A DNA stretch of 64,000 nt from Geosiphon pyriformis uo1 (lineage: Eukaryota > Fungi > Glomeromycota): NCBI GenBank assembly GCA_016748015.1, contig JAAOMT010000760.1, positions 62,001-126,000 of the forward strand, read 5' to 3'. Positions 16,388 through 30,538 of the stretch are shown in pieces. The notes under the pieces are model-generated. The model was not told where the DNA came from. It ran no database searches and saw only the letters and a program-made list of their open reading frames with translations. Each line of letters starts with the position of its first letter. The first letter of the stretch is position 1. The position numbers and the translations under genes were made by a program.

Positions 16388-17900
16388 ATGCAAAAAAATA
16401 TATTAGTATTTCTTTCCTTTTCTCTTCTAACCGTTTGCTTTTCATTTTCCAAAGATCGCAGCGAAAACTTATTGACTGAAAAATTTGCTACACTATCAAA
16501 AAAAATTAATATAACAAAATATAATAATCAACAAGAACTACTCTTGGTAAGTAGTGGAGGTGGATTCGAGAAGCAAAGAAAAGTTCCACCTAAAAAGTTG
16601 GTAAAAGATTACGGGATGCTTCAACTTTTTAAGAATATGGCACATATGGCAAATTGGGTCTATTGTAGTAAAGAAAATGATGATGTATTTGGTAAAGACT
16701 ATATCGGTAAGAGAATTTCCAAGCAAAAATTTGACTTTGGAACTTTCTTTTATACTAGAGCTAAATCTTTTACTAAATTCACATATAAATCGTTTGAATA
16801 GGTAGAGTTTATACTGACGTTAATTTACGACAAATTACTGGAATTTTTAAAGGAAAGTCTTTAAAATAATTACGAGAATTTTCAACTAAATATAATTAAG
16901 TTATTTTACTTTTATACTCGAAAATTATTTTTTCGTTTTTAGTTTCAATAATTTCTCGTATTTTCTTAATTATTAGGGCCAGAAGTGATTAAAAGCCAAA
17001 TAACAAAGACCATGTTTACATTAGAAAAATTATTGATAGGAGATAATAGTGCAGTCAGAGTTGATTCATATTGGTGGAGATTATTGCCATATGATTTTTT
17101 CAAAGGATTTGGCAACAGAATACGTGACGCTATAAATATATTAAGAAGGGGAATAGAAGCGAATAAACCAATTCATATTTTTCTAACTGGCCATGGTATT
17201 GGTGGATGTAAGTAATTATTATTATTAATTTTTTTAATGCAAAAGTTTGGAAGTTAACAGCTAGGGTCCTAACCAAATAATTTTATTATGATATTAGTTT
17301 ATGCACAAATATACGGCTTTTACCTAACAAGTGTTCCAAAATATAATAAAAATATTTATACTACTATTACAACCTTTGGCTCTCCACGTCCGGGAAATTC
17401 TCAGCTTGCAGCCGAATTCCAGCAAAGACTTAAACTTGGTTGCAGAGTTTACAGGATTACACATGCCAATGATTATCTTCCTCATTTTCCAAAAAAATCA
17501 ATCGATGGTAAACTATATATACACCCTGGCAATGAGTATTGGATTCCGGATAGGAATTGTAATTGCGAAGATCCTGATGCAGATAGAATTCTTCTTGAAG
17601 GTTATGACATTATCTATGAATGTCTTGGGTTTTCAACAAAGGATACGCAAAAATATGGCGAAAATCCGGTATGTTAAATTTTTATTATAAAAAGCTTTCA
17701 TTATAGAAAGCTAATTTAATTTATTATTTTAGAGTGCTCTTAAATAAATATAAAATAGCTTTATTTATTTATTTATCTATCTTTCTTTATAGGGATGTAA
17801 TTTAGGCACGGATAGTGAAGGAACAAGAGCTCATTTCGGCCCTTATTTTGGAGTGACATTTGGAAATTGTGAAGAGCCTTATCCTATTGGTGCAATTTAA
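16388..17900 (+). CDS. Secreted class-3 lipase-like protein 2 (Ser->Gly pseudo-lipase), 359 aa; exons 16388-16706, 16802-16852, 16977-17207, 17298-17668, 17793-17900
   Basis: Signal peptide MQKNILVFLSFSLLTVCFSFS; motifs ANWVYC, ITGIFKG, LTGHGIGGFYA, TTFGSPRPG, RITHANDYLPHFP, HPGNEYWI, RAHFGPYFG. Intron 2 (16853-16976) needs a GA donor. Confidence 0.88.
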
Positions 17901-20151
17901 ATTAAAAGTTTGCAAGAAGTTTAGAACACAAATACTTTTAATTCTTTAAAGACTCAAAAGTAATCATATGTACTTTTTCACTTTGCTAATATTGGTAAAA
18001 AAAATTAAATTCTTTCTCAAATATATTTCATTTTAAAATTTAATTAAAAATATCTTTAATTCTAGTGCTTTCAGAAAAGATTTCTTTTTTGATGTATAAT
18101 TAAATTTTCTTAAAATCAATAAGATTCAATCAAGTTGAAAACTCATTTCGCTGACCAAGATTAAATGTGAGAGTTGCCTCGATAATTTTACAGCCTTTCC
18201 ACATTTTCCAGAAGTAACGATAGATTTAATAGTTTATTATTAATTTTGTCAATCAAAAAATGATCCAAAAATTTTAAGAATACTACTAAATTATCAAATT
18301 TTAAATATTTTAAAGACTTTTTTATTTTGAACTTTGAACTCTAGATCCCAAAAAAATTCTCATTCATCAAACTTTAATAAAAAATATGATCAAATACCTT
18401 TTTTTTTTATATATGAATTCTTTGGCTTATTGATAAATTTGTGTGTGTTGAGAATTTTACTCTTATGAATATTACAAAATTTAATAATAATAAATTTTCA
18501 AGTTTTTTTAATTGAAAAAAGTTTATTTTTTCAATAAAAAATGTTATATTTTTTGTTTTACATATAAAAATTTTCTGTTGAATTGGTTTTGAAGATGTTT
18601 TAAATGATTTGATACAGACAAAGTTTTAATAAGATTTTCATAAACATTTACATGTTTATTATAAAATGATAGGATAATTTAATCGCTAACTTTGTTGAAC
18701 GAAGGTTTAATAAATGCTGTTTGAAATGTTTTCAGAGAATTTTGAGTTTTAATTCCGTTTTTTCTACCATATTTCTTTTATCTTAATTACACAAAAATTT
18801 TATATCAGCATCGAGCATAATAAAAATAAAAATTGGTCAAAGGAAATGCCCCTTCGAATATATATTTTCACATAACCCTAAAATAGATTTATCGATCCTT
18901 TTCAGAGCATAACACTCGTATATCATTTCAATCATTCAATATAAATTTATGTTGAGACGAGGAAATCAATAGAAAAACCTTAAAAGATAAATTTTTTATC
19001 TTTTTATTGTTCATTCTTCAATACTCGGTATATCTTTTGTATTTTTTCCAGGTTTTTTTCTGCCCGAGTGTCTATCAATACTTGTAGAAATTCTTTAAAT
19101 AATGATGCAAATGTCATTGAAATTTAAAAATAAAATATAAGGATTAAAAAGAATATTAGCAAATGCAAACAAACATATATTTTTTATTACAAACTATTTT
19201 TTGAAAATGTAAATAAAAAGTGTTTGGTTGCAAAATGATAGATGGAACAGAAAGCTATTAAGAAATAAAGTTTTAAATCTTAAGTGCCTCATTATATTTA
19301 CTATTTTGAGTAAGAATCACTTGGAACATGAAAAGATATGCTTTAAATGAAGAAAAATGGGAAGGAGAAAACAAGACTTTTACCGTTGTGAGATGTGTTT
19401 AACAATTGATTGACCTTCATTTTTGATCAACATTCCTATTAATTTTCGGAGGCTGATGAACAATATCCAAATCCAAACCTTAATTCATATAAATATCAGT
19501 TTGAAGACCAAGCCAAGCAAAGGCCCAGAAGGAAAAATATAAATATTATGACAAACTTGTTCTGATTTGTCATAAAATTTTCTGACGCTACAAAATAAAA
19601 TTGCTGGTTCCGTATTAGATGTCAACTTTTTGTCGTTATTTTACTTGAGCTAGTATCTCAATGAAGTATTACTTTGAAATTTATTTTTCAAAGGAAACCT
19701 GGTATTTTCGATTTATTCAAAATTTCTTTGTAAGAATGAACAGATCAATCAGATAAATTAAATATATTTCAATAAATTTGAGTTTTCTCATTTATAAAAT
19801 CAAATAAATAAATTTTCTTAAAACTACTTGCAGGAAAGTGTTCGAGTAAAGGGTAAGAAATTTAAACATTCTAAAAATAAATATTGGGCACCTAAAATTG
19901 CTTGTATTAAATAGAATTTTTCATTTCCAACTTTTGATATTCTTTGCCTTCAAAATATTTAAATTTTTAATGATATATTAATCTTAAAATAACATTAATT
20001 TAATAGTTTTAAACTAATTCATTATCATTTTTATAAAGAAATATTATAATACTATTCTTACTAATTTCACAAATCTTTTTTTGCTGGATTTTTGAAATCC
20101 TACAATTATTTATGATATTTTATGCGTATATTACATTAAAACTTTTCTTGA

Positions 20152-28217: not shown

Positions 28218-28886
28218 TGAAAAAAAAGAACTGAGAAGATTTTTATATCATTTAATTTATATCAGGGATCCTTTTGAAATTGTGAATTCAGTTTATAACT
28301 TTTGATCAAAACTATAAATCTATAAAGTATGTTAACCTTTTGATTAAGTTTATATTTGTATTAAATAAAATAAAAAAATAAATCTAGTTAATCAAATTGT
28401 TAAAAAAAGCACAAAGATAATAATTTTATTTATTTTCACAAGATATGGAGAATATTATTATTATTATTTTTTATTTTATTTTTATGAATTTGAAAAGAAT
28501 TGTCTTGTTATTAATTATTATAAATTAAAGTTAAAGATTTCAAATTTAAATTTTTTTTATTAATAGAAATTATTTTCATGAAAATCTTATATTGCCTGCT
28601 TTTTATTTTGTGAATACATTTTGATTTTATAAAATTTGATATAAAGATTTTAATCGTAATATATTTTTTCATAATTTTAGTAATTTTTAGTAATTATAAT
28701 GTATTACATAACAATATTTTAAATAAAAATAATTCATTAAAATTTTGAATGAATTTCCAAGGAAAAATTTATTCAACTATCATTTAAAAAGATTGGACTT
28801 AAATACGAAATATTAGAAATTTTTGAATGTAAAAGTAAATGGTTTCGAAACTTTATAGAAATTTTCAAATTTGAAATGTAAACAAC

Positions 28887-30538
28887 TCAAAGAATAGAAT
28901 AATTTTGGTCACAACTTCCAAAGGTTACTCCAAAATAAGGTCCGAAATGAGCTCTTGTTCCTTCGCCATCAGTCCCTAAATTACATTCCTGGCAAAAATA
29001 ATAAATAGAAATTGTTTACTTTTAAGTAGCCCTTTGATTCGGTGAAACAAATTAAACTTCTTTTTAAAAAAAAAAAATTAAAAATACCGGATGCTCTCCA
29101 TATTTTTCTTTGTCCTTTAATGAATATCCTTGACATTCATAAACAATATCATAACCTGCACGAAGAATACTATCAGCATCAGGATCTTTGCAATTACAAT
29201 TCTTATCGTCGGGAATCCAATACTCAGTGCCAGGGTGCATATATGGTTTACCATCAGTTGATATTTTTGGGAAATGAGGAAAATAGTCGTTGCTATGCGT
29301 TATCCTGTAGACTTTGAGATTATATTTAAATCCTTTCTGAGCCAGAGCCGCAAATTGATGATCTCCCGGACGTGGAGCGCCAAAAGTTATAACATTAATA
29401 TATACTTTTTCATTAATTGCCGGAATATTCTTAATTAATATGCCATATATTTCAGCGTAAACTGAGATCATAATTAGAATATATATAACTCACAGATGCC
29501 AGAATTTTGGGTTTAAAATAAATGAATTAAAATTTTTAATGATTTCTTACATCCACCAATACCATGTCCAGTTATGATAATATTAATTGGATCATAGACA
29601 TTTCCGCCACTTCTTAATTCTTTTATGAAATCTTTAATTCTGCCGTCAAATTGTCTGAAAGAACGATCTGGCCATGATTTCCACCAATATGAATCAATTC
29701 TGAATTCCATATTATTTATTCCAGCACGGAATGAGTTTCCTAGTGTAAATTTGGTGTTTTTAATTTGGCTCTTTGTCATTTCCGATCCTAATTAGTATTA
29801 GTATTAGTATTAGTATTAGTATTATTATTATTATTATTATTATTATTATTATTATTATTATTATTATTATTATTATTATTATTATTATTATTATTATTAT
29901 TATTATTATTATTATTATTAAGAGAACAAGAGAAATTCTTAAAAACAAAAGACTTTCAGAGGTATATTCAACGAAAATTTTTGACAAGATTTAAGACTTT
30001 CCTCTAAATGTTCCAGAAATCTGTCTTAAATTAGTGTCTAACAAAACCCTACCTAATCAAGTTATTTTTTATGAGTGAAATTTAAAACCAATTTTAATTT
30101 AGTAATAGTAAAAATAGATTCAAACGAAATATTTTACTTCAAAATTATCATACCGATAAAACCTTGGCCAATTATATCATCTTTTTCTTTGGTACAAAAG
30201 AGTTTATTTGTTATAATTGCTCTTTCTTTGAAAATTTGAAGAAGACCATAATCTTTTAATAGCGTTTTAGGTAATGAAACTTTTTTTTTCTTCATGAATC
30301 CACCTTTATTACTTAATAAAAATAATTTTTGTTGATTATAATGTTGAAAGCTTTTTTCTCGGCGTTTAAAATTCGATTTCAAAAGAAAAATTCTTTTTTG
30401 GTATTCTATAGGACTTGTTTTTTCTGTTAATAAAGCAAGTTTTTCAATGAAAAAATTTTTCCCTTGATTTTTTGAAAATGAAAAGCAAATAAATAGAAAG
30501 AGGGAAAGAAAAATATTTATTAATATATTTTTTAACAT
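28887..30538 (-). CDS. Secreted class-3 lipase-like protein 3 (Ser->Gly pseudo-lipase), 382 aa; exons 30538-30154, 30052-30002, 29787-29551, 29461-29088, 28988-28887
   Basis: Close paralogue of lipase 2 with identical intron positions; ITGHGIGGFYA, ITFGAPRPG, RITHSNDYFPHFP, HPGTEYWI, RAHFGPYFG. Intron 2 (30001-29788) needs a GA donor. Confidence 0.88.
29792..29920. repeat. (TTAGTA)n + (ATT)n microsatellite inside intron 2 of lipase 3
   Basis: Seen directly; it explains the poly-Ile ORFs in the ORF track. Confidence 0.95.

Follow-up and report, generated by a model that had tools for sequence, protein, structure and literature searches.

We analysed a window of 64,000 nucleotides (nt) of the fungus Geosiphon pyriformis uo1 (assembly GCA_016748015.1, contig JAAOMT010000760.1, positions 62,001 to 126,000 of the forward strand), which is part of contig C634 of the 128-Mb assembly and has a G+C content of 25.9%. 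The window means this whole stretch, and all positions given below for its genes are counted from its first letter. Two lipase-like genes of the window, lipase 2 (GenBank G9A89_009769) and lipase 3 (G9A89_009772), have a second exon of 51 nt which is followed by G|GAAAGT, that is, by an intron starting with GA. Judged from the sequences, it is reasonably probable that this is a U2-type intron with GA-AG ends, that it is removed at G|GA...AG|G, and that exon 2 is kept in the messenger RNA (mRNA). The best reading of the case is that it would be a new example, fungal, present in many copies and evolved twice, of the known and rare GA-AG class, and not a new kind of element.

We propose that an otherwise ordinary U2-type spliceosomal intron had its donor changed by mutation from G|GTAAGT to G|GAAAGT, in the ancestor of a clade of genes specific to Geosiphon, that this donor was duplicated into at least seven intact genes, and that a second clade acquired the same change independently. 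The intron would still be excised exactly and the 51-nt exon would stay in place, as the source of the 'FRG' motif, the first beta-strand in the core of a Lipase_3-like protein that is secreted and has no catalytic serine. An A at +2 would be tolerated where the other positions that pair with U1 are optimal (A at -2, G at -1, G at +1, A at +3, A at +4, G at +5 and T at +6), and the use of GA may also be aided by there being no competing in-frame canonical donor nearby.

The proposed GA donor of lipases 2 and 3 and its homologues

Lipase 2 lies on the forward strand. Its exon 1 (16388-16706) starts with ATG, codes for a hydrophobic, signal-peptide-like N-terminus and ends with ...DYI and a single G (phase 1), before the donor G|GTAAGA. 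Exon 2 (16802-16852) is 51 nt long with phase 1-1, codes for (G)RVYTDVNLRQITGIFK(G) and has TTT AAA G at its 3' end. It is followed by intron 2 (16853-16976, 124 nt), with the GA donor AAG|GAAAGTCT and the acceptor TTCTTAATTATTAG|GG, the intron ending in ...TTATTAG. Exon 3 (16977-17207) opens with GG CCA GAA directly after the acceptor at 16976 and codes for (G)PEVIKSQ...LTGHGIGG, in which a glycine of the nucleophile elbow replaces the catalytic serine, exon 4 (17298-17668) codes for (F)YAQIYG...KYGENP, and exon 5 (17793-17897, or to 17900 with the stop codon) codes for GCNLGTD...PIGAI.

Lipase 3 lies on the reverse strand. Its exon 1 (30538-30154) runs from an ATG and a signal-peptide-like N-terminus to ...GQGFI and a G, exon 2 (30052-30002, 51 nt) codes for (G)RVLLDTNLRQISGTFR(G) and ends with TTT AGA G, and intron 2 (30001-29788) has the GA donor GAG|GAAAGTCT and the acceptor ...CTAATTAG|GA, the intron ending in ...AATTAG. 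Exon 3 (29787-29551) opens with GA TCG GAA directly after the acceptor at 29788, and it is separated by canonical GT-AG introns from exon 4 (29461-29088) and exon 4 from exon 5 (28988-28890, with the stop codon at 28889-28887). In both genes, two bases of the next exon complete a glycine codon after the ...TTAG acceptor. Intron 2 of lipase 3 holds a microsatellite at 29795-29925 (reverse strand), made of a long (TAA)n tract and then of (TAC/TAA) repeats, and because of this microsatellite it is 214 nt long compared with 103-124 nt in paralogues.

The coordinates and letters originally predicted for exon 2 and the GA intron of these two genes were correct when the sequence was read again. The same prediction had taken lipase 1 as a copy that reads FKG-RS at this point with no intron, and the exon of lipase 1 (5111-4845, reverse strand) does read GYFKGRSYTPHKW at the same protein position without interruption (...IVGYFKGRSYTPHKW...GHGVGG; GYFKGRSY), which makes it the intron-less comparator for the position of intron 2.

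When the genome was searched in six frames with exon 4, more than 150 matches to the family were obtained. The survey of donors was extended to 90 loci, 36 of which carry intron 2, the remainder being intron-less at that position. The donor of these 36 loci is GT in 20, GC in four and GA in 12. The intron always lies in phase 1, after the first base of the Gly codon of F-R/K-G, and at the GT and GC loci its acceptor is in every case followed by (G)PE. The eight closest loci with a readable junction, which form clade A, have AG|GAAAGT after the 51-nt exon; they comprise seven intact copies (L001, which is lipase 2, L002, L004, L005, L006, L007, which is lipase 3, and L008) and the decayed L010. 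Related GA donors are found in four loci of clade B, on contigs C442, C673, C722 and C606, with AG|GAATGT in L024 and AG|GAAGGT in L027, L028 and L030. The scan of the family for further G|gaaagt donors, suggested together with the original prediction, was thereby productive, and sequencing error, which the prediction had discounted from two copies, is rejected on the strength of the GA donors at 12 loci. More distant paralogues have GT-type donors (G|GTAAGT, G|GTAAAT, G|GTAAGC and G|GTAATT), and GC-AG introns are present at the same place in L011, L014, L019 and L029 (contigs C727, C384, C642 and C541), with the donors AG|GCAAGT, GCATGT, GCAGGT and GCAAGC.

In a tree of the exon 4 proteins, the sister of clade A (support 99/98) is the GT-bearing group of L009, L016 and L017 (98/96), and that of clade B is L018, which also has GT (98/96). 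Forcing all GA copies into one clade cost 37.7 units of log-likelihood and gave P = 0.002 in the approximately unbiased (AU) test, for a grouping that had been defined only after inspection of the tree. The placement in the tree and the AU test indicate that GA arose at least twice at this intron, a single origin being rejected on these sequences, and the nesting of clade A within GT-bearing lineages indicates that its GA is derived from GT. GC arose several times at this intron. Gene conversion carrying GA between clades A and B was rejected because the exon 2 and intron sequences of the two clades are unrelated in detail.

One more clade A copy, L003 (C494:28154-31528), has a stretch of N upstream of exon 3 that hides its donor, and its deposited model (P0156) begins inside exon 3. 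Two decayed clade A copies, L010 (C64:1632-4820), with an exon 2 of 52 nt and a broken exon 4, and L043 (C360:19224-22419), with stops in exon 1 and GCAAAGT for GGAAAGT at the donor, show the appearance of unconstrained copies. The family is hugely expanded, often in tandem clusters (for example on contigs C590, C618, C419 and C787), and it seems to be largely Geosiphon-specific, since a full-library protein search with exon 4 returned the deposited models and nine of the ten 50%-identity cluster representatives sampled from it were Geosiphon proteins.

Constraint on the genes, the 51-nt exon and its donor

All seven intact clade A copies have five open exons, canonical sites at introns 1, 3 and 4 and an N-terminus that is hydrophobic and signal-like, and they differ from each other by 22-39% in their exon 4 protein sequence. 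A codon model was fitted for each exon on the clade A tree, the whole of which post-dates the GA change. The ratio of nonsynonymous to synonymous substitution rates (dN/dS, or omega) was 0.5-0.6 in exon 1 (P < 0.003), 0.43-0.58 in exon 4 (P < 4e-4) and 0.27-0.35 in exon 5 (P < 0.003). These values indicate purifying selection, since GA arose, on the coding sequence that follows the GA intron, and selection on the downstream exons requires an in-frame connection from exon 1. Such a connection is conserved in every copy in two forms, splicing at the GA and skipping of exon 2. It is very improbable that the GA-bearing genes are dead or dying, with open frames that are only residual and no precise splicing to be explained. 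They do belong to a large and fast-evolving family (more than 150 loci, omega 0.4-1) with real pseudogenes (L010 and L043), and they lack the catalytic serine. However, copies that have diverged to this extent have kept their five open exons, all of their splice sites and their signal peptide, exons 1, 4 and 5 have omega values significantly lower than 1 on a tree younger than the GA change, and the change of Ser to Gly is the norm of the family (105 of 133 elbow motifs) rather than a recent lesion.

Comparison of the clade A copies also pointed to a coding type of constraint on the 51-nt exon and to constraint on its donor. Exon 2 is free of indels in 7/7 intact copies, whereas 24 gap intervals were counted over the roughly 218 nt of the introns on either side; the Poisson P is about 0.004 and rises to 0.06 if the event count is halved. 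It has no in-frame stop in any of the seven copies (P about 0.03-0.08 in a neutral simulation at matched divergence), and one of its other frames has two to four stops per copy. The G content of exon 2 is 20%, compared with 9-11% in the introns, and the motif I-x-G-x-F-R/K-(G) is retained in it as in the canonical paralogues. The donor AG|GAAAGT is invariant in the seven intact clade A copies and in L010, whereas positions +4 to +6 vary at donors 1, 3 and 4 in the same genes; invariant columns make up 28% of the interior of the introns, and with intron-like drift six consecutive ones would have a P of about 5e-4. No segment of clade B is better conserved than exon 2, whose identity is 87%, that of the intron being 75% and that of exon 3 73%.

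These results bear on the alternative that exon 2 is constitutively skipped, the change of T to A having killed the donor, with exon 1 joined to exon 3 and the 51 nt lying within an intron of about 270 nt. The join of exon 1 to exon 3 is in frame, exon 2 starts with GT in five of the seven copies, in which exon 1 and that GT recreate a donor, and the dN/dS measured for exon 2 does not fall significantly under 1. The deposited clade A models P0001, P0151, P0152, P0154 and P0155 (the last being that of lipase 2) moreover join ...FIG straight to PE..., and the clade B model P0022 likewise omits exon 2. Skipping, whether partial or constitutive, is the main rival of the GA reading; we nevertheless regard constitutive skipping as quite unlikely. 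It predicts an unconstrained intron, in which the GAAAGT hexamer would be a deep intronic sequence, and this is at odds with the lack of indels and stops, the exon-like composition, the kept G-x-F-R/K-G motif and the invariance of the hexamer, a pattern that clade B shows independently. L005 and L008, in addition, have no GT at the start of exon 2.

The deposited models obey a rule that admits GT donors only and do not count as evidence of skipping, because the GC loci are treated in the same way while the GT loci keep the exon. The model of the GC locus L019 (P0003) skips the exon and that of L014 (P0012) trims three residues by means of an upstream in-frame GT, whereas the models of GT loci, such as P0011 and P0013, include exon 2. 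The clade A model P0153 runs into intron 1. P0002, the model of lipase 3 (G9A89_009772), is a chimera of an unrelated upstream gene for a small secreted protein (31822-31118, reverse strand) and exons 3-5 of lipase 3 (29787-28887); exon 1 is missing from it, and the true exons 1-2 of lipase 3 (30538-30002) fall within its 1.3-kb 'intron'. The entries in the protein database are GenBank models of an ab initio style. If exon 2 is kept in the mRNA, at least 12 deposited Geosiphon models are wrong (seven in clade A, one in clade B, the truncated P0156 of L003, two at GC loci and one chimera), some leaving out an exon, others trimming residues or fusing two genes, and these errors are inherited by the comparative studies that use those proteins.

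All frame-keeping GT or GC donors and AG acceptors were scanned for alternatives to the GA site, and two conserved options were found, one equivalent to skipping and the other made of the GT at +5/+6 of GAAAGT and an AG inside exon 3. According to the original prediction, this GT would run into stops with every AG tried; that claim was overstated, as there is an in-frame, stop-free AG partner 19 nt inside exon 3. The resulting cryptic splice would give ...FKG-N-QITK..., without PEVIKS, and is in frame and free of stops in 7/7 copies, with the acceptor at +16 in L008. Its use is nevertheless hardly credible. Scores were obtained with a position weight matrix (PWM) made from 21 related sites of the family's own introns, a crude matrix that served for large contrasts only. 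With +2 omitted, the GA site scored 10.8 bits, compared with 6.7-12.0 bits for the canonical donors of the same genes, while the cryptic donor context A|GTCTTT scored from -7 to -9 bits and the purine-rich cryptic acceptor from -12 to -21 bits. The normal acceptor ...TTAG|G-PE is used by all GT-bearing paralogues, the cryptic splice would delete PE(V/M)xKS when (G)PE(x)xK/R is conserved throughout the family, and no indel occurs within the 19 nt.

The encoded protein and the symmetry of exon 2

The deposited models matched the Lipase_3 profile (PF01764) with 40-61 bits, for a cut-off of 22, and matched solved lipases with values of up to E = 1e-11. The end of exon 2 maps to positions 1-6 of the profile, in agreement with the predicted equivalence to the 'FRG' motif. 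An AlphaFold model of the canonical paralogue P0011 (predicted template modelling score, pTM, of 0.82) places exon 2 as the strand 41-49, in a block with a predicted local distance difference test (pLDDT) value of 95. This strand is the 'FRG' beta-strand with which the Lipase_3 domain begins, and the model indicates that exon 2 is structurally needed.

The catalytic Ser of the G-x-S-x-G elbow was not present in clades A and B, all copies of which have GHGIGG, aligned to GHSLGG of the T. lanuginosus lipase. The elbow of these lipases reads GHGIGG or GHGVGG, and among the 133 elbow motifs found in 157 family proteins, 105 have Gly at this position, 12 have Ala and 11 have Ser. An Asp motif, RITHxND, can be aligned to RITHTND of a solved lipase, several Cys are invariant in the family, and a His of exon 5 is conserved (AHFGPYFG) and is a candidate for the catalytic His. 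The family resembles the class 3 fungal lipases (PF01764; Thermomyces lanuginosus and Rhizomucor miehei; PDB 1DT3 and 3TGL), with which the FRG strand, the G-H-x-x-G-G elbow and the THxND Asp motif align, and differs from them in having mostly Gly for the nucleophile Ser. Because of this replacement, the proteins are probably secreted pseudo-lipases or binding proteins and not classical hydrolases.

Exon 2 was predicted to be symmetric and skippable in frame, and it is indeed of phase 1-1 in every copy. As the original prediction proposed, the GA donor could act as a switch, being leaky or conditional and giving both a full mRNA and an in-frame form without exon 2, with the efficiency of splicing setting the output of functional protein; the skipped form, lacking the first core strand, would probably be misfolded. 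Such a switch would fit with the general weakness of non-GT donors and with the fact that the in-frame canonical alternatives all amount to skipping, and the repeated drift to GC and GA would be tolerable if partial skipping were harmless or useful. We consider it unlikely, however: no conserved regulatory element was identified for it, the invariant and optimal context of the donor fits maximised use and not tuning, and loss of a core strand modelled with a pLDDT of 95 makes it doubtful that the skipped product would be of use.

Possible recognition of the GA donor and known GA-AG introns

The original prediction described the donor as the U2 consensus G|GTAAGT with a T to A change at +2. Strong comparative support for GA as the probable donor comes from the GT and GC donors of paralogues, the invariant hexamer, the constraint on the exon and the second clade. 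An intron of the U12 type was rejected, as the donor GAAAGTCT has no /RTATCCTT and the homologous introns of paralogues are plain GTAAGT...AG introns. A-to-I editing of the donor was rejected, by our own reasoning, because its product would be GG and not GU. The search for U1 genes gave three with AUACUUACCUG and one weak match with AUAAUUACCUG. The latter, L034 (C622:680489-680640, reverse strand), scores 49.8 bits, below the threshold, and has A for C at position 4 of its 5' end; this change would favour U over G at donor position +5 and is irrelevant to GA donors. The hypothetical variant 5' end, ACTTTCCTGCCTG, has two matches in the genome, neither of them U1-like.

Several observations weigh against the reading in which the GA donor is used and exon 2 is kept. 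An A at +2 usually impairs splicing. The check for variant U1 small nuclear RNAs that had been proposed with the prediction was negative, no compensating U1 (U for A at position 7, ACUUUCC) being found among the detectable U1 genes of the genome, and clade A has no phase-compatible GT upstream such as that of FGFR. The omega of exon 2 was 0.5-0.75 with P = 0.07-0.44, in a test underpowered with 16 codons, and that of exon 3 was about 1 and not significant. The mean nucleotide identity of exon 2 in clade A is 72%, compared with 75-79% for the aligned sites of the introns. Every deposited model for a GA locus skips or avoids exon 2, and no transcript-derived open reading frame for clade A was found in the protein collections, in which a word search with P0001 returned only 12 GenBank Geosiphon proteins and one with exon 3 alone, of little weight because of its length window, gave no candidate.

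Since no compensating U1 variant was found, the likely basis for use of the GA donor is near-perfect pairing of the remaining donor with ordinary U1, as has been described for other functional GA sites (PMC4176328, PMC7072748). We suggest only tentatively that the Geosiphon spliceosome may accept A or C at +2 given perfect pairing with U1, in which case GA-AG would be a recurrent and heritable class and GT-only annotation would systematically drop or fuse exons, or else that the weak donor acts as an in-frame on/off switch. GA is among the rarest functional intron starts, and to our knowledge the passage of GA donors through both catalytic steps is not understood.

GA 5' splice sites represent about 0.01% of annotated introns in plant surveys, as cited in PMC10668435. 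Functional GA-AG introns have been documented in FGFR1-3 and ITPR1 (PMC4176328) and in E. affinis and O. dioica (PMC7072748). The sites of FGFR1-3 and ITPR1 in humans (Parada 2014, PMC4176328; Twigg 1998 and Brackenridge 2003 as cited in PMC4176328 and PMC7072748) resemble those of Geosiphon in having GA within a U2-like consensus and long complementarity to U1, in being conserved between paralogues, and in being prone to mis-annotation since aligners and predictors prefer a nearby GT. The GA site of FGFR is reported to be an alternative donor dependent on a canonical GT located 6 nt upstream, whereas the GA of Geosiphon clade A would be the sole donor. The Geosiphon case also differs from FGFR and ITPR1 in being fungal, in being present in at least 11 intact paralogues and in being predicted from sequence. 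In comparison with the animals that have thousands of GA-AG introns and a proposed U1 variant, the known GA donors of Geosiphon all sit at a single intron position within one family, and its genome gave no U1 variant to match A at +2.

In intron 12 of SYMRK of Trema orientalis, a donor changed from GC to GA is fully functional (PMC10668435). Splicing and function were shown experimentally in that case, for a polymorphism of one gene, whereas the GA of Geosiphon is fixed in two clades of paralogues and its splicing is predicted. The two cases are alike in that a single nucleotide is changed at +2 of a conserved intron whose relatives have GT or GC, which suggests a GT/GC/GA series. In the Geosiphon lipase family, a single intron has GT (20 loci), GC (4) or GA (12) as its donor, GA having two origins and having persisted over many duplications, and this natural series at a homologous intron provides a compact system for the contexts that make position +2 dispensable.

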